Origin: Eutreptiella sp. 'Long Island Sound 2002'
Taxonomy: Eukaryota; Protista; Euglenida
Assembly (NCBI GenBank): GCA_964036045.1
Contig: OZ038379.1
Coordinates: forward strand, 8,122,001 to 8,186,000
Length of the DNA: 64,000 nucleotides
Direction: 5' to 3'
Part shown: positions 1 to 52,711 of the stretch, piece by piece
Numbering within the stretch: the first letter of the stretch is position 1
Layout: each line of letters begins with the position of its first letter
Made by a program: the position numbers and the translations under genes
Notes under the pieces: generated by a model
Database searches by the model: none
What the model was told of the DNA's origin: nothing
The model's input: the letters and a program-made list of their open reading frames with translations, nothing else

Positions 1-779
1 CCACTCTCCAGTGCGCCAGTGTCGCTGTCCAGGGGCATGGGGGCTCCCGGCTCCGCCGTGCCTCCTTTTTTGCAAGTGGTGCGCGTCTTGGAGGGGGTTT
101 CATGCGCATCCTCTGCTGACCTCTTGTGTCGCAGATCGTGAAACTGACAGCGCCCGCATCAGCCTGCAGGTCAAATGAGGTGACCTCAGTACCCCACACT
201 AGCGTCATTCCGTACTGCAGGACGTCAATGTACTTCTGAGGGTCAGCCGATGAGGCTGACACCCCCCGTGCCTCGTGGTACGAACGGGCCAGCAATGAGG
301 CCGACCAGGGGCCCACCTCCGCGCCCCAGCCAGCGACCCCTGCCATAGACCCCTGCCAAAAGCACCTCGAGGCGGTGCTGTTGTGGTACCATGCGGGCCA
401 TCTAGGGGGTTTGTATGACAAGAGCCCAAGCCTTGGCTTTTCAGGGGGGGTATCGTCCTTGAGACGCAACCAGTCCCAAGCCCCTTCGTTTTGTGTTGAG
501 CTCTTCTCCCGCCTGTGCCCCCCCCCCCTCGGAAATTACGAAAGGGTGCACTCAGCAGGAAGGGGGCTGAAGCCCTGACAGAAGGGGGGTTGGGGAGGGG
601 GGGGCAGTGTAGGGGCCCCGTGCATGGTGGTAGAACTTGTGTTACCCTGCTGCACTACGCAACGTACAGTTGTGGGCAGGTAGAACCATTGATTCCCTCG
701 GGATGAGATCCTTGGAGTGGAGCGGACCAATGATGCATGGAACCGCCACCGCACCCCTGCATGAAAATGTTGTGCAGTA

Positions 780-2203
780 GCGCAAAAGTCCCAAATTAAT
801 ACGGTCCCTACGCCTACTGTAGCTTGGACAAGGCCACAGCTTCTGCGCAACACATACAACTACCAACACACACGTGAGTGAACGCATGGTATGAGTGCAC
901 CTTCACGTCCACCCACTTTCCCAAAGGCATGCAAACACACGAAAGTGTTTGAAACATAAATTTCAGGTTCACACCAATGTTCTGACACGTGCAGAAATAT
1001 CTCCAATATCTCCTGTGGCATACATTTGTGTCTGAATGACAAGAGAAATCAACTCTGACAGAGGGCACTTGCACAGAAACAACAGAAGAGCACAGTAAAA
1101 CCACCTGTTTCCAGAAGAAATGTCAAAATGACGTTCCCCCCCAGGGGGGGGGGGAGATTGCAAGGATGGGGAGATTACAAGGGGGGGTAAGGTAACAGTT
1201 GCAGCAACCCGTTTGCTCTCGCAATGGGGGGTAGAGGTACCTCGGCGGGTATCTGAATGAACTTTGATTTTGAAATCTTCAGTAATTGTTGAGTGTTTGC
1301 GCCTCAGGTCACCAAAGCCTCACACAGCGGTGTGCACACATCCCTCCAGCGAGATGCAGGAAACCGAAAATTTTACAGTGTTGCCAAAGGTATTGTGCCT
1401 CAAGATGTGCATCAACACATCAAATTGACCAGGGAGGCATTTGTTTTTGGTTCACAATGCAAATGCAAAGCGCAGTCAATCACATTGTTGTCAATGCCAG
1501 TACAGCCTCTTTTTTTGGTTCTGCCCTGCCAGTGCCTGGCAAGCTATCAACAGAAACTCGGCTTGAACATCTTTGGGCATGACTCAACACAGCGGTCCTG
1601 AGATCAAAAGCATGAGTGTTTGCTGTTGGGCTGTGAAAAGCCCATTGTGGAGGCTGTTGGCTTGCACCAGGTCCTGCCTTTACAGGCTGATAATATGTCG
1701 TACATTCCATGCTTACCTGTTTTTGCACTGCTTGGCCCATCCCTCCGCCCTCAGGAACAAAGAACGAACAAGTGAAGCACGTGCAGTGCACACGTGTCAC
1801 AACTGTTGCATTACAACTGACGCAAGCCAGCACTAGCAACATGCAACACACATACACACACATGCGCACACACACACACTTGTGCAGGAACAGACAAACA
1901 CAACCACCCAGTTTGGATACACGTGGATGATGGTTGGACAACAGACACAACGAGCAACAGTCTGTCAGTTGCAAACATGTCACACCAGTGATGGTGTCAT
2001 GAAGTCATGAGGCTAGGCGCCTGTCTGAAGCAACGGAGCAAAAGAGAGGTCCTGTGCCATAGGTGTGCATGCGGGAGCCCTGTTGCTCATTGCTTGACCA
2101 TTGAGGAGGAGAGAGGCTATGGCATTGCGGTCATACTTACAGTCACCACACGGTGTGCATGTACGAGAGGGCAACTAGCCCAATGCCATTGAAGAAGCAA
2201 CTA
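780..2203. repeat. Composite dispersed repeat made of MITE core plus internal modules; recurs at ~2570-3600, 33880-34330, 46740-48070 and 50330-52320
   Basis: Near-identical blocks such as CAACACATACAACTACCAACACACACGTGAGTGAACGCATGG and GCCTCAAGATGTGCATCAACACATC recur many times, and the same short ORFs reappear in the ORF track. No recognisable protein. Confidence 0.85.
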
Positions 2204-2279
2204 CCCCCCCCCCCCCCCGCCTGTAAAAGCTATGCAAAAGTCCCAAATTAATACGGTCCCTACGCCTACTGTAGCTTGG

Positions 2280-2568
2280 CCATAGAACAGTGGAAAGTTC
2301 AGCAATAGGTCCCCACCGACAGACCTACGCCCTCAATCAGCAAGTATCACGCGGCAGAGCCGCGACACACATTGTCCCATCTGTCCAGCGAAGCGCCTCA
2401 GCTCATCCTTGGATACGGCGCCAGAGGCGCCGCCACAGTTCGCCGGATAGGTCAGGTCGCCCTCCCTAACCCTCAGCAGGAACTGGGTTGAGCTGGCTGG
2501 AACCTCTGAAAGTAAAAACCGCCCCCCGTGTCGACCGCTACGATGAACCCCCAGCGGCCTGCCCACCG
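2280..2568 (-). mobile_element. 5'-truncated 289-bp copy (3' end only) of the L1/Tx1-like LINE at 11309-15668
   Basis: Closely matches 11309-11600. Flanked by the 12-bp direct repeat ACTGTAGCTTGG (2268-2279 and 2569-2580). Confidence 0.9.
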
Positions 2569-3154
2569 ACTGTAGCTTGGACAAGGCCGTAGCTTCCGCG
2601 CCACACATACAACTACCAACACACACGTGAGTGAACGCATGGTATGAGTGCACCTTCACGTCCACCCACTTTCCCAAATGCATGCAAACACAAGAAAGTG
2701 TTTGAAACATGAAACTTCAGGTTCACACCAATGCTCTCATAAGTGCAGAAATATCTCGAAAATGAGAAATATGCCAGTTCAAGTGATCCAACACTCAGAA
2801 GAAATGTGTCCATGACTCTATGTAACCGGCTTGTGGAGGAACAGACAAACACAACCACCCAGTTTGGATACACGTAGATGATGGTTGGACAACAGACACA
2901 ACGAGCAACAGTCTGTCAGTTGCAAACATGTCACACCAGTGATGGTGTCATGAAGTCATGAGGCTAGGCGCCTGTCTGAAGCAACGGAGCAAAAGAGAGG
3001 TCCTGTGCCATAGGTGTGCATGCGGGAGCCCTGTTGCTCATTGCTTGACCGTTGAGGAGGAGAGAGGCTATGGCATTGCGGTCATACTTACAGTCACCAC
3101 ACGGTGTGCATGTACGAGAGGGCAACCAGCCCAATGCCATTGAAGAAGCAACTA

Positions 3155-3604
3155 CCCCCCCCCCCCCCCGCCTGTAAAACCTACGCAAAAGTCCCAAATT
3201 AATACGGTCCCTACGCCTACTGTAGCTTGGACAGGGCCGTAGCTTCCACGCAACACATACAACTACCAACACACACGTGAGTGAACGCATGGTATGAGTG
3301 CACCTTCACGTCCACCCACGTTCCCAAAGGCATGCAAACACAAGAAAGTGTTTGAAATATGAAACTTCAGGTTCACACCAATGTTCTCATAAGTGCAGAA
3401 ATATCTGCAAAATCAGAGCTATGCCAGTTCAAGTGGGCAAACACTCACAACAAATGTGTCCATGACTCGTCACCAAACCCATGTCTTATGTGGCTGCACT
3501 ACATTTGGCACCGAATTAAATTGGGTCCCAAATGAATACGGTCCCTATGCCCGCTGTAGCTTGGACAAGGGCGCAGCTGTTACACGGGGGGGGGGGTGAG
3601 GGGG
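3155..3604 (+). mobile_element. MITE-like element: C-run/TIR, core, spacer, core, TIR/G-run
   Basis: TA-C(n)-GCCTGTAAAACCTACGC at the left end and GCGCAGCTGTTACAC-G(n) at the right. The core AATACGGTCCCTA(C/T)GCC..CTGTAGCTTGGACA is present near both ends. Confidence 0.7.
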
Positions 3605-3960
3605 TCCTATGGGGTTCCCCGGAGATTTGTCCGGCCACACCCAATATTCCCACAGAGGGGGCAGGGCTTCCAATCTCAGAAATCCAGAATACCCCAGTTG
3701 TCACGCAAATGTGGAGAACACACAGGGGTCCTGTTGGAGCACTCACACCCAATCAAGTGCAGTGTGGGAAGTGTTCGAAAAGTGAAACCAAGCGTGTGCA
3801 GCATTCACCCAGCCCCCGAAAGGACGAAGGAGAGCAGCACAAACGACGCTCGGAAAAGGAACACTGGCGCAGAGACTCATGACTCCTGATCCTAAAGGAG
3901 GCACAATTACTGCTCGAGACACCAGTTGGATCCAACCTCTCTTTATTTTTTTCGTACCCT

Positions 3961-4100
3961 CCCCCCCAACCTTGTCCTTCCCCACCCCAGGGAAGACGGT
4001 CCCCCGCCACCCCCTGGGGGACGGTCACCAAGTGACGGTCCCCCACCACCCTCCGGGGGACCGTAGTACCGCCGTACACGCACACTGTGGGGCACAGAAA
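3961..4100 (+). repeat. Left arm of a second C-run MITE-like family with repeated GACGGTC motifs
   Basis: Homologous to 5699-5830 and 44645-44790. Confidence 0.7.
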
Positions 4101-5025
4101 TTGCAGCAGAAGACGAAATAACACAGCATAAAAAACGTTGGTGTGCAGAGCTTGTCACAGTGACAAATGAAAGCAAGTAATGCAACAATATGCAAATCAT
4201 GCGCGCGCTCAATGGGCTGCCAATGTAATGAAATTTACTCCTTGACTCGCTAGGTGTAGAATTTCTTTGTCCTGCTCCATTTGACCTTGAATTCTTGAAT
4301 GTGCTCACCACTTTCCACAGGAATGCTTTGGACAGCACCCTTGGGCGGTGGCTTGGCCCTTTTGGGATTCACCAAGTCACGGTCCCCCGGCCCCCCCTGG
4401 GGAAGGACAAGGGGCGGGGAAGGACAAGGGCCACCGGTTTCTTCTTCCAGTCAGCCCAGCTTCAGGGAAGTCCGCAAGGATATGGCAGTTGTCCCACAGC
4501 ATACACTCGTGACAGATTTCAAGGTCCAAATAGACGTCCCACCACCCTGGGCGGTCTGTGGCATCCCACACAGAACAACCGATGTTGTACTTTACCTGCT
4601 GCCATTAAGGTCCGGTCATACCGCCCAAGCACTTACGAGGCACACGCAAGTCTTAGAACAAAACAAAACATTGGACACACGGCTTCTGGAGACAATCCGT
4701 GTGGTTTTGCAATGCTTTGTGTCAACGAATGCACATGCGGTACAACAGCTTCCCCTGGTGACCTATCTGTTGTTCATTCATTCATTGACAGGGCATTTTC
4801 GCAAAAGGTGCCACCCAGATCAGTCCAATTTCTGAACCCAGAACACCGAGTTGGAACTGCATGCAGACACAGTGTTTGGAGTCACACTGCATAGATGATT
4901 TTGAAGTTTCCCGTTGTCTCGAGTTTCCGAAAAGGTTTCCTGTATATCACCTGGCCGCTTGGCGTGGCATGACCAATGCATGATGCATTTGGCGAATGCT
5001 TTAGATACTCAAGGCACCCCATTTA

Positions 5026-5139
5026 CCCCCCTGCCCCCCTCTTGCGAGAGCATCGCCCTTGTCAGCGTGACAGCAGGGGTTGTTTCTGTCAAAATTCGGG
5101 TCTTTAGTGTTGCTCTTGCAAGGAGGGGGGGCGGGGGGG
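5026..5139 (-). mobile_element. Minimal ~115-bp hairpin MITE, a diverged relative of the main family
   Basis: TA then C-run and CTTGCGAGAGCA ... TGCTCTTGCAAGGA then G-run. Its reverse complement aligns with the main core and with 9825-9895. Confidence 0.7.
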
Positions 5140-5698
5140 TTCCTGGGGCACACTTCCCTTGTGAGGCTGTCCCTCTACACTGTGTATAGCGACATTTGAT
5201 CCAGGATCATGTGGCGAGCACAATTGGACACAGCGTGTGCCAGACAAAAAAGAGAGGTAAGATCCAACTGACAACTCGGACAGACCGGCATGTCTGATCA
5301 TTACGGACCGTGGCATAGCCATGATTCCGCTCCCCAGATGGGGCCGTACATTGGACTGGCAGATGTACCCTCCCCGCCGCCAAGGCTGAGACTGGGAGGG
5401 TGGCATGAAGGCTGTGTGTTCGATGTTTATTTGTTTTTTGTGTTCCAGCGCTAGGCGTGAGCAGCAGCCCCTCATCGATATTGATTGTAGGCAACTTCAA
5501 TCCCATGCTTTTTTAATCCCAGGGTACACTGTGTGTGTTGTGCACGTCGAGCTCTGACCTAAAACCTCATTTCGTAAAACAAATGCAAACATCATGATTC
5601 CAAACATTTTCGGTTGGCGGGCCTTGCACCCAAAGTTTTGAATTCTACGGTTTCTCACCAACCCCATGTTGCTTGGCCAAGGAACCTGGGGGGAAACA

Positions 5699-6295
5699 CC
5701 CCCCCCCCTTGTCCTGCCCCACCCCAGGGAAGACAGTCCCCCGCCACCCCTTGGGGGACGGTTGCCAAGTGACGGTCCCCCAACCCCCCTGGGGGACCGC
5801 ACTACCACCATACACGCACATTTTCAGGCACAGAAATTGCAGTGCAAAACGAAAGAATAATGTGGAAGGACTGTCTTGCCTTCACGCTCATAAGAGATGC
5901 AGTGATGTGCATCACTGTGCTCTGAGTATCCAACGACCTGCGCCAAACAGGTTCCCCTGTGTAGCGGATGAACATGACATTCGTCCCAGGGGTAAACATG
6001 CTTGTGCTGTCAAGTTCCATTTCAGCAAAAGTGAGCAACATGTCCTGCCAAGAGTACAAAGGATACAAGTGGCAGTGCCTCACAAAACAGTCACAAACCC
6101 ACACAACAACACAGTGAGCTGTAACAAAAAAATTTGTGTTGACCAAGTGACGCCCCCCCCCCCTGGGAAGGACAATGGGTGGGGCAGGACAAGGGCCGCA
6201 CGCAGGCCCAAGAGCGCTCGACACATGCACGTCCTGGTGTGCATATGCAGCAATGTTCGGCAGTTGCTCACACACAGGACAAAGGGGGGGGGGGG
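5699..6295 (+). mobile_element. MITE-like element with C-run/G-run termini
   Basis: C(n)TTGTCC at the left and GGACAAA-G(n)-TA at the right. Homologous to 44645-45101. Confidence 0.65.
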
Positions 6296-7149
6296 TACCA
6301 ACATAAGAAGGGAAGGCATCCTTAGGATTGTCCCAGTTGCGTCATCAGAGAGCCCACCAAGTCAGCTCCACAGAGCCCCCCCTGCCCGCACTCGGGAACA
6401 CAATCTGTGCACAACCAGAAACACCAGATTGTGCATATCTAGAATGCTTTAGTCACAAGGATGCCAACAACGGAAAAATAAAACGCATTTTCACAGACTA
6501 AGCCTGAGAACAGAAATAGAACAGTGAATTCTACGCTGCATTTCGGGACCTGCAACGTTTGGCAGTTGCAACATGCAAGATGGAAATTCCCAACCGTCTG
6601 ACAAGGCCAACCAACCTCACCAAGAGCACTGACATCCATTCCTAACCCCAGCCTTTTGCCCTGGCAGGCAGAGACCCTCGGCTGCAAGCAGAAGCAGACA
6701 TATCACTACCCTGAGCACTGGTGCAGAACTTCTAACAATTTCGTCCTTCAGCTGCAAAAACCCATCCCTTGGAACAATGACAATCCATTTCTTAAAATGT
6801 ATTTACAACAACGTGACTGAGTGGAACAGCAGGTCAACACATGCTTCACCAAATGAAACTTGCGATCCTAGATACACAAACACAGGGATATTATCAAGAT
6901 GGAGGGCACTACTGCTGCCAGCTGCTCCAAGGACCTCCAAGTTTTTGCAACAGAGGGGTGCGTTGCATACTTGCATCAACTACCTCAGACCTACAACAGA
7001 GGGTTGCTTACACTAAACAGATTTACCCTCCCCAAAGGAGCCCCCTAAGTCGACCAGAGTGGACCACAAACCTTCCCTACAAAGCACGCTGTATAAGTCG
7101 AAGTAGCTGAATTCAACAACAACCTGTGTCAAGCATGTATTGGCTAATA

Positions 7150-8720
7150 AATAACTTGGTCCCCACAAGTGTGGGCATCAATACATTCATCACAATAATG
7201 CTCCTGGCGCTCACCACACTGTGATGATGGAGCGCTTCTGACAACACAACGCACACACATCTGCCTCATCCTCTCCCTCATCTTGCGTGGCGGTTGAGTT
7301 GCTTTTATTAGTCCACACATGAGGCAGGACATGGTCCCATGGCCCATAAGGAGGGTGAAAGACCTGCCTCCAAATGCAAAATTGCGTGAAATGCAACAAA
7401 ACACGCACGGACTGGTGCAACTCGGTAGGGCCACCACGCCACATGTTCCTAACTAAACCCCAATGCCACAACTGTCCAAACAAGTGCTCAATGTGTGCCC
7501 TATACCACCCATGCACATCATAGTACGATTGTTGCCGGGCCGTCAAAGTTCCATTCTTTCTTCCAATGAATGGCACAATGACATGAATCCGGCCTTTGGG
7601 GGAATGTTTGCCCGGCGCGCGCGCTACTTTTAGACTATGTTCCCCCCGAAGAGCCCCCAAGCACACCCCTTGGAAACGCCCTTAGAATTAGGTGACCCAA
7701 ACTGCCCCAGCTCAAGAAAGTTGCAAACTGGGGTACACAGTACCACTCTCGCTCCTTTAAGGGCGGTCTTGGTCAACACCTTAGCAAGTTGGGAGAATGG
7801 GGGGTTAGGATAGCACAACCGCATCGATCTCCAGTAGAAGCGATAGGCGTCATTGAGGTATCGCGAACAGTAGAGCTGCATCATAACATTGGTCCCACAA
7901 GTGTGGGTGTCAATACATTCAGTACAATAGTGCTCCTTACACTCATCCCAAACTACAACGGTGGAGCGTTATGGCAACACAACACACACACTTCTGCCTC
8001 ATCCTCTGCCTCATCTTGCGTGCCACAACCGAGCAAACGGCTGCTCAATGCGTGCCCTATACCACCCGTGCACGTCATTGTAACACTGTTGGCGGGCTGT
8101 CAAAGTGCCATTCTTTCTTCCAATTAATGGCACAATGACATGAATCCGGCCCTTATAAGCACCATCATGGCCCCCAACTTCGAAATCAAAGAAATCACCT
8201 CGGGTACGAGAAGGTCCATACCCATCCCAAATCTGCTGATGTCCCGGGGGCCAAGGGGCAAATCCATATAATGTTGCCCAACATATCAACGGCAACAGTC
8301 CACCGGTAGGGCACGGGTCAAAAAAGATGCCCGGCGCGCTAACGTTCCCCCTTTATCAGCGCCATCATGGCCCCCAACCTCAAAATCAACGAAATCACCA
8401 CGGGTAAGAGACGGTCCATACCCCTCCCAGATCAGAACATATCGGCAGATGTCCCCGGGGCAAAGGGGCAAATCCATTCAATGTTGCCCAACATAATAAC
8501 GGCAATAGTTACCTTGTAAACATAACAAAAAGGTCTAAGGACGCAAGGGGCAAAAACTAATGCTCTACAGCGGATATGCGCATACAAGGGGGCTGGATTA
8601 CCTTTTTGAGTGACATGCACAACAACACACACAAACGAAGATCGGCCCGGTTTCCTCAATAGCACCGGAAGGCCGAATCGAAGACAAAGGACGGTTAGGT
8701 TCCCTGTAGGTACTGAAACC
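7150..8720 (-). pseudogene. Fragmented DDE_Tnp_4 (PIF/Harbinger/IS5-like) transposase, interrupted by a related element
   Basis: Translated pieces YKVTIAVIMLGNIEWICPFAPGTSAD, GGHDGA(Y/D)KG and YNDVHGWYRARIEQ / YRAHIEHLFGQLW match the DDE_Tnp_4 pattern K.Q...D..G.I....PGS..D / D.GY.G / N......R..IE..FG.L. A Cys-rich C-terminal remnant follows. Frameshifts and stops are present. Confidence 0.75.
7598..8351. mobile_element. Non-autonomous Harbinger-like element, ~13-bp TIR, 3-bp TSD (TTT)
   Basis: Left end GGGGGAATGTTTG, right end CTAACGTTCCCCC, TTT at 7595-7597 and 8352-8354. Carries internal transposase remnants. Confidence 0.8.
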
Positions 8721-8826
8721 ACCGAAGTAGAGCTCGGGATGGCCTTGGGTTACCTGGAGGTACTATCTTAGCACTTGCCCCTAGAAGCGATCAACGTAGA
8801 TGCTCTGGCTGCCTTTGTCACTCAGC

Positions 8827-9075
8827 ATGGCTACATAACCCCGGCCGTCTAGGGGGCCCACATGTGGGCAGAACGGCTACATCACCCCTGCCTTCTCGGG
8901 GGTCCCCATGGTGGGGAGAGATCAATATGGCATCACCCCTGCCATCTCGGGGTCCCCATGGTGGGGAGAGATCAAAATGGCTACATCACCGCTGCTTTCT
9001 TGGGGTCCCCATGGTGGGGAGAGATCAATATGGCTGCATCACCCCTGCCTTCTCGGGGTCCCCATGTAGCGGAGA
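8827..9075 (+). repeat. ~52-bp minisatellite, about 5 units, each with a short hairpin
   Basis: Unit ~ATGGCTACATCACCCCTGCCTTCTCGGGGTCCCCATGGTGGGGAGAGATCAAT. Related units at ~16965-17060. Confidence 0.85.
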
Positions 9076-11593
9076 AAAGAGGGATGGAAAATGGGTAAAA
9101 GTGGGTGACAATTCAAATATGCCACATCCAAAATGCATAAGAAGCAAAAAAAAAAACCCGGTATGGAACAAAAAACTTGTGGAAAGGGGCATTCTCCATA
9201 TCCCCAACCGTAAAGGCCGTGCAAAAAGCGTGGATTACGGCTCCGTATCAAAAATGGCCCAAAAACATGCTTGGCGTGCACCCAGCGCGCTGCCACTCCC
9301 CAGTAGGGTTGATCCGCAAAATATGCAATGTTCTCCAAATCATCAAGCTTCATCCCATTGGGAAAATATGCAGCCTGTGTGGCTTGCAGAATCTTCTCCT
9401 CAGGGATACAAGGAGTCATCGCTAAAAGGGGCACCTGCAAAAAAGAGAAGAAGAAAGCACAACACCACCACCCATTATCAAAAGAAAAGTGGAAGTGACC
9501 CCCCCCCTTGTGACTCATTGGAGATGAAAAGATAGCGCTATCACAACCGTGCCTCCAAAAAGCTGCCCTGGATTGAGATTATTGTTGCTCGGAGTGCATG
9601 CACGTTATCTTACAAAATGGCCGCTTGAAATGTAGCCCCCCTCCCTTGTAAAAGGTACGCAAAGGTCCCGAATTAATATGGTCCCTGCGCCTACTATAGC
9701 TTGGAAGGGGGGGGGGGGTCCTGAAACAGCCCCACTACAAAAACACGGCTCGAAGATCGGAGGAATCATATGCGTTTGTAGTGAAAAGACGTTGTCTGGG
9801 TTGTGTATTTACCACCACCACCCCTTGCGAGAGCAACACTAAAATCCCCAAATTTGACGGAAACAACACCTACTGTTGTTCTGACAAGGGCGTTGTGCTC
9901 CCAGGGCCATGATGTCATGAACCAATAACCAGCATGATCCCCTCATGCCAGACTTACTCAGTTGTTCTCGCATCAGCGGCGAGGGAGGGGGCGGCACACT
10001 GGGACATGCACGGAAAAATAGCGCTACAAAGTCTGAAATAGCACACGGGGCCTCATCCTGGCGAAGTGGAATCTGGTGATAAAAGAAATGAAACAGTTCT
10101 TTCAGCAGAGCATGAAATGTTAATTTTCAAGGCTCGAGACACAGAGTGTTGATTTGACTGGACCATCCCTTCAACCACTGCACAGAATTACAACGATTAC
10201 AAAGTACAGTCTGAAAAATGGGACGGAGGAATGATATGCATTGTTCTGGAAAGACATTGTCAGGATTGTGCATATACAATTGGGACCGTGGAGGAAAAAA
10301 CGGGCTCTAACTCCTGACAACGAACTACCCCAAAGACAGACTTTGATGACACATCATAAGAACGTGAAATGAAAAAATTATGACGTAGGACAATGGAACA
10401 AGAAATGGATGAATGCTAAACGACTAACATACCAACCTGCATCCTATGGGCCAGTCCGAATGCAACAGCTTTCCACAGCAAAGGGCTCATTTGTCGTCCT
10501 CTCATATTGGACCAGGCTGCTCAAAGCGGTTTCGGGTTTTCGCTTTGACTTCCTGCCTGGGTTTCGAATTTTTTTGGACACATTTATGGGGATTGAGGGG
10601 ACACGGCTCAGACCAGGCAACCAGAACAGGTCAAAAAAAGACCCGATTTGAGCATTGGGTTGGGGCACCGAGTCCTGAACCACAGGGACAGCCTGCTGGC
10701 GGAGTCTCCGTGTTGCTTGTCAGAGGCTGCAGGACTGGATGGGTCTTAGTTTTACATTTTGCCTTTGAGGGGGAAGCCTCAAACTCTGCTTAATTTGGCA
10801 CCGGGCCATTGACAGTCTGCAGCCAAGATCAAGATCTGAGAGGAAGGCGCCCAGTCGCGAAATGCTCCTGTTGTGAGGGGGGAAAGCCCTTTAAGCCGGA
10901 GCTGGGCTCAGGAAGGTGAGTCCCACCTGGACCTCTTTTTATGGTACCCCCCACTCCCCCTTGTAATAGCTACGCAAAAGTCCCAAAATAATACGGTCCC
11001 TATGCCCACTACGCAAAAGTCCCAAAATAATACGGTCCCTATGCCCACTGTAGCTTTGACAAGGCCGTAGCTTGCATGTACCCCATACATGGTGGGCTGG
11101 TGCAAGAAAGGGGAATTTCAGGCACAAATATCCCCAAAATTAGAGCTATGTGGGTTCAAGTAGGTAAACACTCACAACAAATGTGTCCATGACCCTATAT
11201 AAGTGGCAAAATTGTCACCAAACCCATGTCTTATGTGGCCGCACTACATTTGTACCAAATCAAATCAGGTACCAAATTAATACGGTCCCTACGCCCGCTG
11301 TAGCTTGGCCATAGAACAGTGGAAAGTTCAGCAATAGGTCCCCACCGACAGACCTATGCCCTCAATCAGCAAGTATCACGCGGCGGAGCCGCGGCACACA
11401 TTGTCCCATCTGTCCAGCGAAGCGCCACAGCTCTCCTTCGGATACGGCGCCGGAGGCGCCGCCACAGTTCTTCAGGATAGGTCAGGTCGCCCTCCCTACC
11501 CTCAGCAGGAACTGGGTTGAGCTGACAGGTACCTCCGAGACGAAAATAAAACCACCCCCCGTGTCGACCACTATGACGAACCCCCAGCGACCT

Positions 11594-11657
11594 GTCCGCC
11601 GGGTTTCGAACCCACGACCCATGACGTGGGAGACAAGCGTGTTTCCGATATGCTACC
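11594..11657 (-). ncRNA. Degenerate tRNA-like segment (box A/box B) in the LINE 3' UTR
   Basis: Box A-like TAGCATATCGG (11645-11655), anticodon-loop-like CTCCCAC (11626-11632), exact box B GGTTCGAAACC within 11601-11613, followed by GGCGGA as in tRNA-Val 3' halves. The acceptor and anticodon stems do not pair, so this is not a functional tRNA. Confidence 0.5.
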
Positions 11658-11889
11658 GTCCGATGTGCTGTGTACCGGCCGTGGGAACCACCAGATCTCT
11701 CCCCCCCCCACCGACCCCAGCGGTTGCTGCTGCGGTATGCACTTAGTGCAGACCTTCAAGGCGGAAATGCCCGGTGGCGTGCCCGTCGACCTCGCCACCG
11801 ACCGTGGCTTGGGAGCCACGCGTGTTTCTGGTATGCTCCTCCCCCGTTGTTGCCCCGTGCTCCAGAGGCGCCACTGGCACCCCTCCGTC

Positions 11890-12981
11890 TCAGGACTCGA
11901 TCCCCCTCCGCCGCCTCTTCCTGCTCTCACTCACGTCCGTACTGAACCCATCACTGTCACTGTCCCACGTCCCCCGCAACCGCGTGTCACTGACATCCGT
12001 ACTGAATGACATGTCTTCCGAGCTGGACAGAAAAACGTCTTCGTCGTCCGACGTTGACGATGCGGTCGAACTGCCGCTTGACGTCCCCCCAGAGTCCACC
12101 TGTGACCCCAGGTCCCGGTCGGACACTTCTGCCATGGGCTCCAGCCCCAATGCATCCCACTCCGTGACTCGGCGTCGTTTGGATAGGGGCAGCAGGTTAT
12201 AGGGGTGCAGCTCCCGGCCCTGCCCCGCAAGTTCATCGGCTGCCTCATTACCGGCCACCCCGAGGTGCGATGGCACCCAGCGGACCTGTAACTTGTCCCC
12301 CGCCTCCCCGCGAAGCCAATCAATGTGCTCCCACAAGTCTCTGTGCCCCACCTCCCCTGACGACGTGCGCCACCCGTGCCTCTTCCACTTGTCCGTCCAC
12401 ACTGTGATTGCCTTAAAAATGTATTCGGAATCCACCACCACCACCATCCGCTCCCCCGCCTCCTGACTGAGCATCGCATGTAGCACCCCTCGCAACTCCC
12501 CCCTGCTGATACTCTGTCGCTCATGAGCTGGCACGTGCGCCCGAAAATTACGATTACTGTTGTCCCCGAACCAAACCCCGTACCCTGCTTGCATCCAACC
12601 TCGGACGCGTTTCGCCGAGCCATCCGTGTACACTATGACCCACCCCTCACCCGACATCCCCTCTAGTTCCGCCAACAAAGAACGTTTGTGGTTACCCCAC
12701 TTTTCCTCCTTTAACTTCAGCGGGTCTGGTCGCGCTGACGGCAGCTTGGCCGTCGTGGGGGCTTGGGGCGCCCTGTGGAACATCGTCTTATGGTCCGCCC
12801 AGCTGTGGAGCTGTGCTATCAAATGGCGCAGATCGACTCGACTGCACGACATGTTGCGCTCCCCCCTCCAGATTTCCAACACACCCACCCAAACAGCTAC
12901 AAACTCCTCCAACGAAACCTGCCGATGCCGATACTTCACCTCGCACCGCAGCTTCCACTGCGCACGCAGGCCTGCCCACAA
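11890..12981 (-). CDS. RNase H domain of the LINE ORF2 C-terminus, with an acidic Ser/Asp tail and a basic end
   Basis: YTDGS ... SRGELRG ... VDSEY ... WKRHGWRT..G.VGHRDLW ... WVPSH.GVAGNEAADELA; the four acidic catalytic residues are present. Confidence 0.9.
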   Translation of the reverse strand: MWAGLRAQWKLRCEVKYRHRQVSLEEFVAVWVGVLEIWRGERNMSCSRVDLRHLIAQLHSWADHKTMFHRAPQAPTTAKLPSARPDPLKLKEEKWGNHKRSLLAELEGMSGEGWVIVYTDGSAKRVRGWMQAGYGVWFGDNSNRNFRAHVPAHERQSISRGELRGVLHAMLSQEAGERMVVVVDSEYIFKAITVWTDKWKRHGWRTSSGEVGHRDLWEHIDWLRGEAGDKLQVRWVPSHLGVAGNEAADELAGQGRELHPYNLLPLSKRRRVTEWDALGLEPMAEVSDRDLGSQVDSGGTSSGSSTASSTSDDEDVFLSSSEDMSFSTDVSDTRLRGTWDSDSDGFSTDVSESRKRRRRGIES

Positions 12982-13043
12982 AACGAGGCCCTGCGTCGTC
13001 TGCAGCGACAGCAGAGGTTCCTCCAGCAGAAGCCTGCTGGGCT

Positions 13044-13616
13044 CTACTGCTCCCCCCCCCCCCCCTGCGCCAGGCCAAACGCCTTTCTCACCGTATCAAA
13101 CATAAATGCCGAGAAGTAGCACCGCTTCAGCGTGTGCGCGTGGTCCTCCACCCGCCCGCACTGTGGACACAGCTTACCCCCCAGCCGCTCCATGCGAGCG
13201 CCAACTGGCAGCTTGCGCCACAGAACCCTCCGTATGAAATCCAAATCCCATTTGGGGAGGTGTAGGCGCCCAAACACACGCCATACTTCCTCAGGCTGAC
13301 GGGCCTCGTGGCGCGTGCGCTGCTGCATGGCCAAAAGGGTCCGTCGCTTCGCCCACTGCACCGACCAATTATCCACCGGGGGGGTCGCCGGGACCGCAAA
13401 ATTGGGTTCGTACATCCCCACCACCCTCAAAGCCGACTCCTCATAGATGGCACGCCATGTGGGGGCCACAGTGCCTAACAGCTGGGGTGGTATCTTGGAC
13501 CCCGAGATGAGGTCACACCAGCGCAGCACCCCCCTCCGGTGCAGTGCCGGGCAGTAGTAGGTCAACCAAACCTTATTACGAAAGAACACACAGTGCCAAA
13601 CGCCCAAGGACCACAA
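13044..13616 (-). CDS. zf-RVT-like segment of LINE ORF2; frameshifted from its neighbours at G/C homopolymer runs
   Basis: LWRKLPVGARM...CPQCGRVEDHAHTLKRC matches the L1-type CCHC region. The frame breaks coincide with homopolymers near 13625-13660 and 13050-13065. Confidence 0.75.
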   Translation of the reverse strand: MWSLGVWHCVFFRNKVWLTYYCPALHRRGVLRWCDLISGSKIPPQLLGTVAPTWRAIYEESALRVVGMYEPNFAVPATPPVDNWSVQWAKRRTLLAMQQRTRHEARQPEEVWRVFGRLHLPKWDLDFIRRVLWRKLPVGARMERLGGKLCPQCGRVEDHAHTLKRCYFSAFMFDTVRKAFGLAQGGGGEQ

Positions 13617-13617
13617 T

Positions 13618-15668
13618 TCATGCAGGGGGGGGGGGAGCCGGTGCCCCCCCCCCCCCCCGTCGAACCACCGAGTACGCCTTCACGGTACCCTGCAAAAAGG
13701 TAGGCTTGGGCAGATAGGCTTGGCTGGCTAGCTGTAGATAGGGAAGAAACGCCGGTTCCAGCACCAACCCCACTCGGTCGGCCCACCCCCGGAACGGCCG
13801 CGCATGTTGTTCTGCCAACGACGCTGGCCGTACCACTGCCTGAACAAACGTTTGGCTGTGTACCCAGGTCGCGCACATACCCAATCCTACCTGCCCCAGA
13901 CCCCCCTCCGCCGGAGGCAGAGCCAAGATCGGCATCGTGAGATGCCAGTTATTAATGTCCAGTGCCGCCCTGTGGACCATGTTTAGTTGCGCCACCACAT
14001 GCTCCGTTGGAGCATAGGCCCGTGCAGTCAAGTAGACCACTGGGGCTATCCACGTAGCGAACAGATACGCCCGCTCCTCCATTCCCAGTGGCAACGTGGC
14101 CAGGGTGCGTGCCCGCGCCAGCATTTTTGCGACCACGGGTGCGTATGCACCAGCCGCTGTCACATTACCCAACTGGATGCCCAGGTACTTGAGTTGTTCC
14201 TTCACCGTCAGCCCCGCCAACGTGGCCGGCCGTGGGGCATCTGGGTCCGAACACTTGACTACCGCATACGTTTTCGAAAAATTCACCCTCAGGCCACAGA
14301 AATACCCAAACACCTGCAGGACATACAAAACCGCCCTCAGATCGGCCACCTGTTGCGGCCCCCGCCCCGGCAGCGCCAACAAAATATCATCTGCGTATAG
14401 CAGCACCACCACATTAACATGCAACCGTTTGAAATCAAAAATCAGTAGGACCGTTATCAAGTCAAAAAGCAAGGGGGACAGTGGGTCCCCTTGTCGGATG
14501 CCCGAACGTGGGCTCAGCTCCACGTCGGCCACAAAGCCCCTCCCCACGCAAAATAAAACGGGCCCCGCCGACACTGACATCAACAAACCAACGTACGCCA
14601 AGGGCAACCCCAGGTGGATCAGGGTGACCCGCAACAGGGTGAAAGTTACCGAGTCATAAGCTTTCTGAAAATCCACCGCCACCATGATCTGGTCTGGCAG
14701 CCGCTCCCACTCTGCCCTGGCGTAGATTACATGGTCCAGCATCTGCCGCCCCGGCACGAAGCCTTTCTGACAGGGGGGGATCACCTGTGGCCACACGTCC
14801 GAGAGCTGCAACATCACCGTAGTGGTCACCCACTTTAGGCATACCTGCTGGAGCGCAATGGGTCTCATATCTTTGGGTTGTTCCGCCCCACAAAACTTAG
14901 GCAGGCACCGCATCAGAGAGACCGACCACTCCGCTGGCACCCCCCCCACCCTAAGGAAATCCTGCATGGCTGACAATAACCGCGGAGCAAAAACAGATGG
15001 AAACGCCTGGTATAGCTCCGCTGGTATACCATCCTTACCCGGTGTCGATCCCCCTTTAAGACGCTCGAGAGCCGCCAATACCACGTCCAGCGACAGTGGC
15101 TTCATAAGCAAAGGCAACGCCTGCAGGATTTTCGGGGGAATGGGTAGGGACCTTACATACCGCCAGCACTCCTCTTCGGTTACTGCATTCCCCGCCATGA
15201 CCCCCGCCCAATAGTCCCGCATAGCCTGTGCGATCGCCCGCACCCCGGTGTGTACCCCCCCCTGCGAGTCCCGAACTCGTGCCACGTGCTGTCGCTCTCG
15301 CAACTGCCGTACCAAGTTGTGGATGGTCCGCCGCCGATTTGCCTGACCTTGAACTCGCACCTCCCGCGGCTGTAACTGACGTTTTAGCCTATCACACATA
15401 TCCGATTTGAACATGGCCTCGCGCTGGTTCGCCAGCAAAGATACCAACAGCCCGTACCCCTCCCCCACCGACCTCGGCGAATATCCCAGCTCCTCTAGAT
15501 AGTCCAGTGCCCCCAACGCCAGTTTTACCGGGGTGCTCTCGCGTACCAGGCTATGCAGTTCCGTGTAACCCGAGGTGGGGTGCGCTTGGCGCCACTCACG
15601 AGCTTCCCGCTGCAGGAAACCCGTCACCCCCGCCCACCACTCCGTGGTCCCCAAGTCTCTCCCCAAGA
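13618..15668 (-). CDS. Reverse transcriptase, L1/Tx1-like, N-terminally truncated
   Basis: QKGFVPGRQM, VDFQKAYDSV, GIRQGDPLSPLLF, LYADD, GLRVNFSKT, KYLG. Confidence 0.95.
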
Positions 15669-16589
15669 CCCGCTGTAGCTTGGACAAGGCCGTAGCTAAT
15701 ACAAGGGGGGGAGGGGGGGTACTTTGTCTTTCGAAATTGGTTCAAAAGAGGGCACCAGGCGAGCGAGAGCCCCTCCAGAGGGGGACTTTCCACAGAGGTG
15801 TTTCGGTTAGTACACCGCATTACACGTGTCAATTTTGCGTGACCTGCATGTCTCTTGCGAGTGGGGGAGAGATGTGTGAGTGAAGTGTTTGTCGTCCTGC
15901 ACCCATCTGCCGCACGCCTGCAGAAGGGCGGAGGTTTCGGCAGAAGAACCCAAAGAGTTGCAACCACTTTGTTATCTGGCTCCCTCACCAGCCCGCAAAC
16001 CACTGGGAGAAGCAAATGTTCTGGAGAGGGGCTTGAGCAAGCCGGGGGGGGGCAGAAACATTTCACTGTGGGCGAAATTGGGCTATGACAGTGGAGCTTG
16101 GGCTTTTGCTGAAACATGGGGATGGACAAAGAGGCGGAACTGAAAAATTGTGACTTTCAGCAGAGGACGCCAAAGTGAGATGGTCGAACATCGCAATCGC
16201 CTTGCGTTCCATGGCACCCAAACTGCTGGCTGAGGGCCCCAAAGCATGGAAGTACTGTGCAATGTGCTACCACAGTCACAGAATGTGGAGCTGTATTCGG
16301 TTCCGCTGGTTTAGAGGGTTAGTTGGACGTGAACGTATCTGAATCACGCATTGAGCCCGGTCCCCGCTCGCTGACACACACACAAACACACGGATGCAAA
16401 AGCCCAGCAGAGGGGGAATGTTTGCCCCGCGTGTGCCCGGTGCGCTACTTTTCTATTAACTATCCCGACTTCAGCCCCAGATTTACCCTCTCATGAATAA
16501 GCCCCCCAAGTGGACCACGTTGGACTGCACACCCTCCCTACAAAGCACGTTGCATAATAAAGCAATAGCTGTGAATTCAACAACTCCAA

Positions 16590-16920
16590 CTGTCAATTGT
16601 ATTGTATTTAACAAACAGCATTGCTCCCACAAGTGTGGGTGTCGGTACATTCAGTACAATGGTGCTCTTCACACTCATCGCAAACTGCGACAGTGGAGCG
16701 CTTCTGACAACACAACACACACACTTCTGCCTCATCCTCTGCCTCATCTTGCGTGGCAGCCGGGTTGCTTTCATCAGTCCAAACATGACGCGGGACATGC
16801 TCCCATGGTCCATAGGGGGGGTTGCGGACTTGCCTGCGAATGCAAAATTGGGTAAAATGCAACAGAATACGGACTGACTGGTGCAACTCATTGGGGGAGC
16901 CACGCCAGATGTCCTAACCT
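16590..16920 (-). pseudogene. C-terminal remnant of the DDE_Tnp_4-like transposase
   Basis: HQSVRILLHFTQFCIRRQV..PPYGPWEHVP and CVLCCQKR...CDECEEHHCTEC are homologous to 7150-7450. Confidence 0.7.
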
Positions 16921-17105
16921 AAACCCAATGCCACAACCGAGCAAAGGGGGACAAAATCAGAATTGGCTGCCTCACCCCTGTCTTCTTGGGGGCCCAAAAG
17001 AGGGCGGAAATGCTGCGTCACCCCTGCATTCTCGGAGGTCCCCAACGAAGGGGACAAAATGAGATCTCAAAACCTACGGTAGGGGTAACAATGATGCCCC
17101 TAGTA

Positions 17106-33633: not shown

Positions 33634-34649
33634 ACGGCCAGACACCCAAAGAGCTGCACTGCGCTAAGCGCGCCCCCTTAGTGCACCCCCTGAAAGGTCA
33701 CTGGTGGGACACGGGTCAAAAAAGATGCCCGGCGCGCGCCCGGCGCACTAACGCTCCCCCAGAAATGCAGAAAGAATACCTCAAATCTGGGCTACAAGCG
33801 CCCAGGATGGCCATGGGAAAGCAGCCTGTGAGCAGACCTAACTGGTGAATGGGGGAGCCTCTGGCTGTACTCCCACCCCCCCCTTGCCCCTGTAAGACCT
33901 ACGCAAAAGTCCCAAATTAATACGGTCCCTACGCCTACTGTAGCTTGGACAGGGCCGTAGCTTCCACGTAACACATACAACTACCAACACACACGTGAGT
34001 GAACGCATGGTATGAGTGCACCTTCACGTCCACCCACGTTCCCAAAGGCATGCAAACACAAGAAAGTGTTTGAAATATGAAACTTCAGGTTCAGACCAAT
34101 GTTCTCATAAGTGCAGAAATATCTCCAAAATCAGAGCGATGCCAGTTCAAGTGGGCAAACACTCACAACAAATGTCTCCATGACTCTATGCAACTGACAA
34201 ATTCGTCACCAAACCCATGTCTTATGTGGCTGCACTACATTTAGTACCGCATTAAATTGGGTCCAAAAAAAATACGGTCCCTATGCCCGATGTAGCTTGG
34301 ACAAGGGCACAGGGGGGCAGGGGGTACCCATGGGGTGGCCTTCCTTCATCACCAGGGGATGCATCCAGACAGCCCAGATGGAGGGGAATGTCTGTCCAAC
34401 CCATGGGCTATGCTCCTAAATGTGCAAAAAGGGAAGCCAACTGCTTGTAGGGGATCGGCTCCGCCAGCACATCAGGGGCTGGCGGACCCAGTATGTCAAC
34501 AGGGGGACAAGCCAGAGGAAGGGCTTAAGGCGAGGGGCAGGAAACAGGGACAACTGCAGTGTGCCATACCCATCCCTGTGGGGGTTGGCGGCAGATATCG
34601 GGCGTACAGCCCTCATGCTGTCCAGTGGGACCAGCAGTAAGCTAAGAAG

Positions 34650-45101: not shown

Positions 45102-48100
45102 TACATTGTTAGTTGGAACATGGAAGTTTAGAATTATAATGCGAGTTTTTGAAAATTCCATATGTTGCTAAAGAATCGCCTGTGAAATTCCACGCCGCGC
45201 ACCTTAGGGATTTTGCCGCCAACCAATTTCTGAGCCATGCATATTTGAAGAAAAGGTCTGTGAATAATGCGTGAAATTCAGAAATTCATACATGGAATGA
45301 AAATCAAAAAAATGCTGTTCCAAAGATGTGCAAAAACATAGAAAAGAGTCCTTTTGGGTGCACATTCAATTGAAAGGGGAAGATAAAAGTGTAAAACTTT
45401 GTGGATCTCATTCAGGATGGATTGATGGACATAGGTGTTCAATATTTAAACAAATTAAGATAGCTTAGCAAATCTACATCAGTGTGCAAGTTGCATTTAT
45501 GTTTGGAAATTCACAGAATTTCAGGATGTTTCTTTAAGTGAGTTTGCAAAGTGAATCGGGTTCAGCTCTTGTGGTGGCTTTAAGGATGATGAGATTGAAA
45601 TGAGATTATTTTAGAGTGCAAGGCTTTTGAGTCCAAAGTGAAACCAAGTGGAAAGTCAATTTTTCTTACTCGAAGAGAAATACACGAGTACACGTTGTTG
45701 CTGCAGTCCTTGCAGTGCGCTTGGTAGCTGGTTTTGCAAGTGCTTAGAACTTCCTTCAACCACGACTTGCACTTTCCTTTTCCCGCTCACAGGTCTCTTG
45801 TGAAGGGCGGAAGGAAAACCTGGGGATTATGGACAACACCAATACCTAGCTGAGTGGTATGCTAAATACGTCTAGCAGAACAGTAGTAGCGCTATTTCTG
45901 GAACACTATATAGTGTTCAATTAGACGTGAAGCTTGTTCCACTACACGTGAGACGTCCCGTGGAACAGTAGTAGGGCAAGCTAGATGCAACATCTTGTTC
46001 CACTAGACGTAAATACACTGTAATACACTATGTACAGCTATGTGTAATAGGCACATTGATTTGACTTTATGTGCATGTGCACGGCTGTTCTAATACATCC
46101 CGGGGGGGGAGGCAGGTGATAAAGGGCAAACTAGGACACGGTTGCAAACTTTGCAGAAACACGACCTATTGTTGCTCTCACAAGGGCCATGATCTCATTC
46201 AAATAATGCGCAAACTGCGAGATTGGTACCTTACCCCAACCTTGCGATCTCCCCCCCAATATCGTGATGGTTCCCCCCCAACGGGGGGGGGGGGGTCGCG
46301 AAATCAGGGTCCCCCCCGCTGGGGGGGAGGGATTGCACCACCAAACCATAACACTTCAGAACTGCAGCTGTGCATGCACAACACCAGTAGCGTGAATCAA
46401 AATGAACCATGATGTTACTTCTGTGCACGTGCCCTTTCCACAGGCACTGTGTGAAACTTCTTTTTACGACTCAAAACAACCTTGAGCTCCTGGACATGCT
46501 CAGTGGGCAATTCAGGTATAGGCTGAGGATTGGAAGACAAGGTAGGCTCTGCAGCTCAGTTTCCAGCCCTTCTGGCGGCTGATTTGGCTGGCTTGGACTT
46601 GACAAGCACCTTCAGTTGTTCGGGAATCTGGTCATGCTTGAGAACGTCACATGTAAAGTACAACTTTCCATCAAACACATGACGCTGTCCCTAAACCCCA
46701 CGGGCCACCCTGCAAGAGTGGGACCAAAGACGAATGCCTCTGGCATACATTTGTGTCTGAATGACAAGAGAAGTCAACTCTGACAGAGGGCATGAAACCA
46801 TGCAGGAAACCAGAAATTTTACAGTGTTGCCAGAGGTATTGTGCCTCAAGATGTGCATCAACACATCAAATTGACCAGGGAGGCATTTGTATTTGCTTCA
46901 CAATGCAAATGCAAAGCGCAGTCAATCACATTGTTGTCAATGCCAGTACAGCCTCTTTTTTTGGTTCTGCCCTGCCAGTGCCTGGCAAGCTATCAACAGA
47001 AACTCGGCTTGAACATCTTTGGGCATGACTCAACACAGCGGTCCTGAGATCAAAAGCATGAGTGTTTGCTGTTGGGCTGTGAAAAGCCCATTGTGGAGGC
47101 TGTTGGCTTGCATCAGGTCCTGCCTTTACAGGCTGATAATATGTCGTACATTCCATGCTTACCTGTTTTTGCACTGCTTGGCCCATCTCTCCGCCCTTAG
47201 GGGCAAAGAACCAACACGTGAAGCACGTGCAGTGCACACGTGTCACAACTGTTGCATTACAACTGACACAACCCAGCACTAGCAACATGCAATACACATA
47301 CACACACGTGCGCATACACACACTTATGGAGGAACAGACAAGGTTGGACGACAGACACAACGAGCAACAGTCTGTCAGTTGCAAACACGTCACACCAGTG
47401 ATGGTGTCATGAAGTCATAAGGCTAGGCGCCTGTCTGAAGCAACGGAGCAAAAGAGAGGTCCTGTGCCATAGGTGTGCATGCAGGAGCCCTGTTGCTCAT
47501 TGCTTGACCATTCAGGAGGAGAGAGGCTATGGCGTTGCGGTCATACTTACAGTCACCACACGGTGTGCATGTACGAGAGGGCAACCAGCCCAATGCCATT
47601 GAAGAAGCAACTACACCCCCCCGCCCCTGTAAAACCTACGCAAAAGTCCCAAATTAATACCGTCCCTACGCCTACTGTAGCTTGGACAAGGCCATAGCTT
47701 CTGCGCAACACATACAACTACCAACACACACGTGAGTGAACGCATGGTATGAGTGCACCTTCACGTCCACCCACGTTCCCAAAGGCATGCAAACACAAGA
47801 AAGTGTTTGAAATATGAAACTTCAGGTTCACACCCACGTTCTCATAAGTGCAGAAATATCTCCAAAATCAGAGCTATGCCAGTTCAAGTGGGCAAACACT
47901 CACAACAATGTGTCCATGACTCTATGCAACTGGCAAATTCGTCACCAAACCCATGTGTTATGTGGCTGCACTACATTTGGCACCGAATTAAATTGGGTCC
48001 CAAAGTAATACGGTCCGTATGCCCGCTGTAGCTTGGACAAGGGCGTAGCTTTTACACGGGGGGGGGGGGGGCTATGGTATTCCCCGGAGATTTGTCCGGC

Positions 48101-51100: not shown

Positions 51101-52711
51101 CGTCCACCCACGTTCCCAAAGGCATGCAAACACAAGAAAGTGTTTGAAACATGAAATTTCAGGTTCACACCCACGTTCTCATAAGTGCAGAAATATCTCC
51201 AACATCTCCTGTGGCATACATTTGTGTCTGAATGACAAGAGAAGTCAACTCTGACAGAGGGCACTTGCACAGAAACAACAGAAGAGCACAGTACAACCAC
51301 CCGTTTCCAGAAGAAATGTCAAAGTGACGTTCCCCCCCTGGGGGGGGGGATTGCAAGGATGGGGAGATTACAAGGGGGGGTAAGGTAACAGTTGCAGCAA
51401 CCCGTTTGCTCTCGCAATGGGGGGTAGAGGTACCTCGGGGGGTATCTGAATGAACTTTGATTTTGAAATGTTCAGTAATTGTTGAGTGTTTGCGCCTCAG
51501 GTCACCAAAGCCTCACACAGCGGTGTGTACACATCCCTCCAGCGAGATGCAGGAAGCCAAAAATTTTACAGTGTTGCCAGAGGTATTATGCCTCAAGATG
51601 TGCATCAACACATCAAATTGACCAGGGAGGCATTTGTATTTGCTTCACAATGCAAATGCAAAGCGCAGTCAATCACATTGTTGTCAATGCCAGTACAGCC
51701 TCTTTTTTTGGTTCTGCCCTGCCAGTGCCTGGCAAGCTATCAACAGAAACTCGGCTTGAACATCTTTGGGCATGACTCAACACAGCGGTCCTGAGATCAA
51801 AAGCATGAGTGTTTGCTGTTGGGCTGTGAAAAGCCCATTGTGGAGGCTGTTGGCTTGCATCAGGTCCTGCCTTTACAGGCTGATAATATGTCATACATTC
51901 CATGCTTACCTGTTTTTGCACTGCTTGGCCCATCTCTCCGCCCTCAGGGGCATAGAACCAACGCGCAACACAACTACGAACACACACGTGAGTGAACGCA
52001 TGGTATGAGTGCACCTTCACGTCCACCCACGTTCCCAAAGGCATGCAAACACAGAAGGGTGTTTGAAATATGAAACTTCAGGTTCACACCCACGTTCTCA
52101 TACGTGCAGAAATATCTCCAAAATCAGAGCTATGCCAGTTCAAGTGGGCAAACACTCACAACAATGTGTCCATGACTCTATGCAACTGGCAAATTCGTCA
52201 GCAAGCCCATGTGTTATGTGGACCACATTTGGTACCGAATTAAATTGGGTCCCAAATTAATGCGGTCCCTACGCCCGCTGTAGCTTGGACAAGGGCGTAG
52301 CTTTTACACGGGGGGGGGGGGTACCCATGGGGTGGCTTCCTTCATCGCCATGGAATCCATCCAGACAGCCCAGATGGCCCGGCGCATGCCCTGAGCGCTA
52401 CCTTTGTATTAAGTATCCTGTATCTAGCCCCAAATTTATCCTCACCTAGGGAAGTCCGCAAAGACCGCAAACATTCCATGCAAAGCACGGTGCATAAGAC
52501 GAAAGATGAGAATTCAACGACACAAGATGTCAGTCCGACCATTTCCAACCACCACTCTTGCCATTATCATAAGCTTGAAGCAAAGGAGGGGTAAGATTCT
52601 TAAACACTGCAAGGAGGTACGCCAGATTGTTTGGTGAGGGAAGGGGGGGAACAGGTGCGGGTGGGGAATGGTCAATGCGCCTGGCGCGTGCCCGGCTAGC
52701 TAATACTTTTG

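Follow-up and report, generated by a model that had tools for sequence, protein, structure and literature searches.

A 64,000-nucleotide stretch of the genome of the euglenid Eutreptiella sp. 'Long Island Sound 2002' (assembly GCA_964036045.1, contig OZ038379.1, forward-strand positions 8,122,001 to 8,186,000; hereafter the window, in whose own numbering positions are given) contains two copies of a long interspersed nuclear element (LINE), each of which abuts the same base of a short motif carried by MITEs (miniature inverted-repeat transposable elements). We propose, with a probability of about 0.88, that this is a sequence-specific LINE of the apurinic/apyrimidinic endonuclease (APE) type, which integrates at one bond of the motif YTGTWGCTTGG|ACAAGG, and that the motif has been spread by MITEs. 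The transposon-targeting lifestyle among LINEs has so far been described only for the Tx1 elements of frogs and crocodilians.

A single junction in the window and across the genome

On the forward strand, both window junctions read ...CTGTAGCTTGG|CCATAGAACAG, with the abutment falling on the same base at 2279|2280 and 11308|11309; the identity of the two 3′ junctions that was claimed in the original prediction on this DNA is thus confirmed at the base level. Copy 1 (2280-2568, reverse strand) is a 5′-truncated remnant comprising the final 289 nt of the 3′ untranslated region (UTR), with 91% identity to 11309-11601, and is bracketed on the forward strand by a 12-bp target-site duplication, ACTGTAGCTTGG, at 2268-2279 and 2569-2580. 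Copy 2 (11309-15668, reverse strand) spans 4360 bp, is 5′-truncated within its second open reading frame (ORF2), which has two frame breaks, and lies between the two forward-strand copies of a 15-bp duplication, CCCGCTGTAGCTTGG, at 11294-11308 and 15669-15683. Past the right-hand duplication of both copies the ACAAGG of the MITE resumes, as it does at uninterrupted sites.

The two insertions are independent, as had also been proposed. Copy 1 occupies the left (A) site of one MITE and copy 2 the right (B) site of another MITE copy; their duplications differ in sequence as well as in length, their truncation points are far apart and their shared 3′ parts have diverged by 9% (263 of 288 aligned bases identical, 91%). 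Further, the locus of copy 1 has an empty paralogue, in which 2830-3129 matches 1879-2178 at 99% and the MITE at 3155-3602 lacks the LINE. Such local segmental duplications, of which the 1879-2178/2830-3129 pair is but one example, fill the window, and LINE-bearing MITEs have been duplicated segmentally elsewhere in the genome, both of which lend some color to the idea that a single insertion gave rise to both copies when its MITE was later duplicated. This is refuted by the junction sequences: a left-repeat site in one case and a right-repeat site in the other, duplications of 12 and 15 bp with different sequences, truncation to 289 and 4360 bp and the 9% divergence leave it with next to no probability. 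The window also offers a supply of free targets, previously put at about ten copies. Allowing at most one mismatch, CTGTAGCTTGG occurs 16 times, always on the forward strand, against 1.1 occurrences expected by chance; in agreement with the earlier count, uninterrupted ...GG|ACA sites make up nine of these, regenerated duplication copies and occupied sites contribute two each, and the remainder are variants.

A genome search with the 5′-most 400 nt of copy 2 recovered about 47 copies in which the shared sequence continues further upstream. Hence, copy 2 is 5′-truncated and carries eight extra bases at its 5′ junction (15661-15668, TCTTGGGG in the sense orientation), which are absent from the sibling copies. 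As these bases are similar to ACTTGGGG, a stretch of the LINE located a few bases further downstream, they suggest that a template jump or microhomology may have been involved in the 5′ joining.

Exact-sequence counts across the genome (2.28 Gb in 2,317 contigs) extend the window junction to the whole family. The last 24 nt of the LINE occur 479 times, as against roughly 1,300 3′ ends in all when diverged copies are included; CTTGG directly precedes 435 of these (91%), where about 0.5 would be expected by chance, and the full CTGTAGCTTGG directly precedes 208 (43%). Free or regenerated CTGTAGCTTGGACAAGG sites number 6,428, as opposed to about 0.3 expected for a random 17-mer. For a closer view of the flanks, we combined the 30 best-matching copies with an unselected 40 places taken in genome order; these 70 loci yielded 56 distinct left flanks, with identical events that also share outer flanks (L015-18, L052/54 and L067/68) being counted once each. 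CTTGG occupies positions −5 to −1 in 55 of the 56 flanks, whereas the positions before it are less strict (G in about 90% at −6 and about 93% at −9, T in about 80% at both −8 and −10). Beyond the duplication, in the 39 events for which the fetched DNA reaches the 5′ junction, the successive bases A-C-A-A-G-G are present in 95, 97, 95, 87, 87 and 92%. Together, the distinct flanks give the target consensus YTGTWGCTTGG|ACAAGG. The duplication measures 15 bp in 19 of the 39 events and mostly 14-17 bp in the others (range about 9-17), the 5′ truncation point differs from event to event (41 to >1,800 nt), and head-to-tail re-insertions into a regenerated site are found at L028, L043-45 and L061. 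Independent insertions of this LINE accordingly share one junction and a consensus far above chance, which is the defining behavior of a sequence-specific element. Tabulated by their flanks, the genomic copies do not lie in unrelated sequence: besides the 435 preceded by CTTGG, most of those sampled are situated in polyC/polyG-ended inverted-repeat elements. The neighboring sequence GCTTATACAAGG is naturally unused as a LINE site.

The target motif and its carriers

Most of the sampled targets follow a common design, viz., TA, polyC, TTGTATAAGCTACGCC ... GGCGTAGCTTATACAA, polyG, TA, in which the TA adjoins the polyC in 12 of 19 and the polyG in 13 of 18 sampled elements. They have inverted termini of 26-32 nt, are small (about 100-440 bp), show no coding capacity and are present in high copy number. 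By these features, i.e., inverted termini, the TA duplication, a size of 100-440 bp and thousands of copies, the targets appear to be Tc1/mariner-like MITEs. A scan of window positions 1-17000 against Rfam gave no match; therefore, the target is not an RNA gene.

At least four polyC/polyG-ended families carry LINE insertions. In the family found in the window the motif is present twice in direct orientation, with the A site lying 58 bp in from the left end and 21 nt separating the B site from the polyG on the right, whereas the motif and the terminal repeat are one and the same (...GYTTGG|ACAAGGGGGGG-TA) in other families, among them one whose termini read polyC-TTGTCCAAGCAAC. In the unselected set, 25 of the 36 distinct events fall inside such elements by an automatic criterion; when read by eye, most of the remaining 11 proved to lie in related MITE families or in tandem LINE arrays. 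The sharing of the motif by at least four families, along with a few sites that seem to lie outside any MITE, indicates that the specificity is for the approximately 17-bp motif and not for MITEs as such, with MITE amplification having made the motif abundant. Thus, of the original prediction that the LINE targets one exact nucleotide of a MITE, the exact base stands, while the target has to be restated as a motif distributed over several families.

The same target is used by other LINEs. At L032 (G000:C1:6611276-6613196), about +215 to +700 from the junction, a second, related LINE family occupies the next motif copy (GGCGGTGCTTGG|) within the MITE end that holds the first LINE, the two sites being 17 bp apart; the second family ends in ...CCGTTTTATGG, as against ...CTGTTCTATGG in the first. 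Hence, several LINE families share both the target and the terminal ATGG. A further set of mosaic subfamilies (L033, L038, L049, L053, L055, L061 and L066) matches our LINE over the last ~118 nt at 92-96% and then continues into an unrelated 3′ UTR; these are mostly placed at GTGTTGCTTGG-type sites, not at CTGTAGCTTGG-type sites. The distribution of targets and insertions is uneven along C1 (201 Mb), on which all 20 LINE 3′ ends are located below 17 Mb or above 142 Mb; there, the free target motif is much denser distally, and the central ~60% is nearly devoid of both the motif and LINE ends.

Insertion and recognition of the site

The observed junction, duplications, target consensus, independent events and domain content are most likely explained by target-primed reverse transcription. 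The first nick would fall after the GG on the strand reading CTTGG|ACAAGG; it is placed on this strand because the cDNA strand (the LINE antisense) is contiguous with ...CTTGG-3′. The 3′-OH of the GG would then prime cDNA synthesis at the exact 3′ end of the RNA (...CUAUGG), and the other strand would usually be cut 15 bp away, generating the target-site duplication, with most copies ending up 5′-truncated. In the process, the right-hand copy of the duplication restores the full target and leaves it open to re-insertion. The tandem head-to-tail insertions are explained by this regeneration, and they imply in turn that no more than 15 bp of target are needed on the primer side. Since the motif is abundant as a terminal or subterminal repeat of several MITE families, the LINE would land almost only in other transposons, and its benefit is presumably a harmless landing site.

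We infer that the motif is read by a protein, most simply the predicted endonuclease, as in Tx1L and the R1-type elements, because the ACAAGG beyond the nick is conserved even though it cannot pair with the template. The most serious competitor to this is a specificity lodged mainly in the RNA, whereby a read-through tail, CCAAG..., pairs with the nicked CTTGG-3′ and only matching sites are productive. It would account for the invariance of the five nucleotides of CTTGG while −6 to −11 vary, and it fits with the lack of poly(A) and a junction that is exact in all cases; moreover, every copy lies in front of CCAAG, so that read-through transcripts would include this sequence. However, pairing does not extend to the ACAAGG, each base of which is nevertheless conserved at 87-97%. 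Further, elements with the same 118-nt tail but different upstream sequence differ in their target spectrum, with 28 of 34 as against 2 of 7 sites lying within one mismatch of CTGTAGCTTGG (hand-tallied counts from a small sample, Fisher p ~0.01). Such a difference in the face of a common tail points to a protein, and we consider it unlikely, if still worth serious weight, that RNA is the main determinant. The two modes of recognition are not mutually exclusive, and pairing of a read-through CCAAG at the RNA 3′ end with CTTGG possibly assists the targeting.

A preference for the DNA structure or chromatin state of MITE ends, e.g., cruciforms formed at the inverted repeats, rather than for sequence, could draw on the concentration of the LINE and its targets in distal C1 and on the partly palindromic motif core, CTTG-GA-CAAG. 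Yet it sits poorly with the single-base precision and the invariant pentamer across different elements and at sites apparently outside MITEs, or with re-insertion beside LINE sequence, which needs at most 15 bp of target on one side; we regard it as very improbable. More improbable still is that the CTTGG and adjoining MITE sequence form part of a composite repeat, made up of the LINE tail and a piece of MITE, that spreads as a unit. While a constant association in a constant orientation is what such a repeat would display, the MITE sequence occurs in duplicate to either side of the LINE and is contiguous in empty copies, at least four MITE families, with apparently a few further sequences, supply the flanks, and the LINE lengths vary.

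Certain observations do weigh against a motif-reading LINE confined to MITE-borne sites. In the genome-wide count, 44 of the 479 LINE ends (9%) lack CTTGG; no MITE seems to surround about three to four of the 36 unselected sites (L035, L039, L049 and perhaps L038); the invariance of CTTGG could come from pairing between primer and template and not from recognition by a protein; and, as all the sampled copies carry the exact 24-nt 3′ end, the samples represent this class to the exclusion of older or diverged copies.

The LINE, its relatives and its host MITEs

The reverse strand of copy 2 encodes, from its 3′ end, a 3′ UTR of about 584 nt (11309-11892) that ends in ...CTGTTCTATGG with no poly(A), an RNase H domain (12214-12639; Pfam PF00075, E = 1.2e-26), a zinc-finger region weakly matching zf-RVT (13107-13301; PF13966, E = 0.0023, below the gathering score) and a reverse transcriptase (RT) domain (14170-14877; PF00078, E = 4.7e-23). 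The distance from the ORF2 stop to the 3′ end is 584 nt in copy 2 and in seven of the nine siblings read, and 588 and 681 nt in the other two. The last 122 nt show 100% identity in the 40 scored copies, copy 2 itself being among them; as a folded RNA, this segment is no more stable than shuffled sequence (z = −1.3). The start of ORF2 in the siblings lies about 900 bp further upstream, and an overlapping ORF1, represented by its last 200 aa, comes before it. ORF2, of about 1,550 aa, has the order APE endonuclease, RT, zinc finger and RNase H. Six of 28 sibling copies are open across all 930 available codons, which suggests that the LINE is, or was until recently, active; many copies are 96-100% identical.

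The APE domain lies outside both truncated window copies and is present in the siblings. Its match to PF03372 is weak (E ~1e-3), and a single-sequence search of PDB with the endonuclease region returned no true match, such that its recognition needed an alignment and a predicted fold. The catalytic residues N20, E57, D166, N168, D232, D255 and H256 are all aligned and conserved in the siblings. An AlphaFold model of the N-terminal 280 aa of ORF2 (predicted local distance difference test, pLDDT, 81; predicted template-modeling score, pTM, 0.82) has the human L1 endonuclease as its best structural match (E = 6e-14, template-modeling score, TM, 0.65-0.78). The ORF2 N-terminus is hence predicted to be an AP-type endonuclease. 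With a LINE-type RT, an APE domain, variable 5′ truncation, target-site duplications and no terminal repeats, the element has the constitution of an APE-type LINE.

Among solved structures in PDB, the RT is closest to the human L1 ORF2p (1.4e-28), followed at a distance by R2 (7.6e-13). A word-based protein search returned five matches with the whole ORF2 and 520 with the RT core alone; the nearest named database relatives of the RT are plant L1-type proteins with zf-RVT, some of them with RNase H, at 24-33% identity. On the strength of these affinities the LINE may be termed L1-like, a provisional clade placement that comes from comparison with solved structures and named database proteins. 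The plant L1-type LINEs with zf-RVT and RNase H share with it the domain order APE, RT, zf-RVT and RNase H. They end in poly(A), unlike the euglenid LINE, and to our knowledge are not site-specific.

The nearest known thematic equivalents come from animals. In Xenopus, Tx1 inserts into the non-autonomous piggyBac element Tx1D, and the specificity of Tx1L is ascribed to its own endonuclease (PMC4494074, citing Christensen et al. 2000). In crocodilians, Tx1-Mar and the SINEU short interspersed nuclear elements (SINEs) insert into Mariner-N4_AMi with duplications of ~16 bp and tandem insertions, while Tx1-9_AMi inserts into Harbinger transposons (PMC4494074). The original prediction drew an analogy between the euglenid LINE and Tx1L/Tx2L as parasites of a parasite, and this largely holds: like Tx1L/Tx2L of Xenopus laevis, which insert into Tx1D/Tx2D, it is of the APE type and uses one defined site in a DNA transposon. 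In contrast to them, it resides in a protist, its target is a TA-flanked polyC/polyG MITE and not a piggyBac derivative, its ORF2 has an RNase H domain and its nearest named relatives are of the plant L1 type. With Tx1-Mar it has in common the mariner-type non-autonomous target, the tandem insertions that sandwich a duplication, the several related LINE families per target and the duplications, which are mostly 15 bp in the euglenid LINE. However, the crocodilian families are old (85-91% to consensus), in contrast to the euglenid copies with their high identity and some open reading frames, and the euglenid motif is a terminal or subterminal repeat common to several MITE families. Nor did we see a SINE partner comparable to SINEU for the euglenid LINE: the sole candidate, an extra segment following ~255-285 nt at L007 and L028, was rejected, having turned out to belong to another LINE subfamily as a variant of its 3′ UTR.

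R1, TRAS/SART, Keno and Kibi/Koshi target rRNA or snRNA genes, telomeric repeats or microsatellites, whereas the euglenid LINE targets transposons. It nonetheless resembles them in its precise 3′ junction, defined nick and tandem arrays at the regenerated target (PMC4494074), as also in the use of multicopy targets harmless to the host. The Tx1 clade is distributed in animals (PMC4494074), a range that does not include the euglenid host. The published account of the Euglena genome gives only bulk repeat figures, with ~33% of the genome as unclassified repeat (PMC11252322), and our full-text literature search found no description of the present LINE in Euglena.

These observations extend transposon-targeting LINEs from vertebrates to a euglenid, which suggests that the strategy of a safe landing site arose more than once. 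More tentatively, and at somewhat less than even odds, an RNase H-bearing L1-like lineage, unrelated to the animal Tx1 clade, might have acquired on its own an endonuclease with a recognition sequence of about 17 bp, with several of its subfamilies tracking the terminal-repeat motifs of several MITE families resident in the same genome (CTGTAGCTTGG, GTGTTGCTTGG and others). If so, this would be a protist case of one parasite living on another, the two co-evolving and the elements still active. The family is young, has open frames and uses a long, well-defined target (about 17 bp) that occurs in thousands of natural variants; it therefore also offers material for the study of how AP-type endonucleases acquire specificity, and the definition of these elements should be of use in annotating the very repeat-rich Euglena genome.

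The further proposal that the LINE could hitch-hike on MITE movement found no support. In the sampled loci, no LINE-bearing MITE was seen at two places with different outer flanks; the repeated LINE-bearing MITEs considered as candidates (L015-18, L052/54 and L067/68) share flanks outside the MITE and are segmental duplications, and L041 and L067 are independent insertions. For insertions at the A and B sites, hitch-hiking is a speculation; for those in the terminal repeat it is unlikely, because the insertion would part the MITE body from its final 10-20 bp.

In the window, the complete form of the host MITE is represented by an intact, empty element of ~440 bp (3155-3602, forward strand, as are all MITE features below), with 32-nt inverted terminal repeats, an A site at 3220-3230 and a B site at 3554-3564. 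The left end of the first host, comprising the polyC, the terminal inverted repeat and the A motif up to the nick (2205-2279), recurs in this empty copy at 3155-3230; its remainder follows the LINE at 2581-2829 (2566-2818 matches 3216-3468 at 93%), and its right end is missing where a local tandem duplication has its boundary, the next repeat unit starting from 2830. The second host extends from its left end (TA then polyC, 10945-10947) through the body to the B motif up to the nick (10947-11308) and, beyond the LINE, retains the right terminal repeat and polyG end (15684-15719), followed by TA at 15720-15721. It also has an internal 39-bp tandem duplication of the subterminal region (10986-11049) and a mutated, unoccupied A site (CTGTAGCTTTG, 11048-11058). 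MITEs recur with the same outer flanks, of two types, at 700-3640, 33830-34380 and 47570-52360. Given these shared outer flanks and the location of all the motifs on the forward strand, the MITE-bearing parts of the window are local same-orientation segmental duplications and not independent MITE insertions. A four-unit tandem repeat with a unit of ~53 nt (CATCACCCCTGCC.TCTCGGGGTCCCCATGGTGGGGAGAGATCAA...), unrelated to the LINE, lies at 8881-9089.

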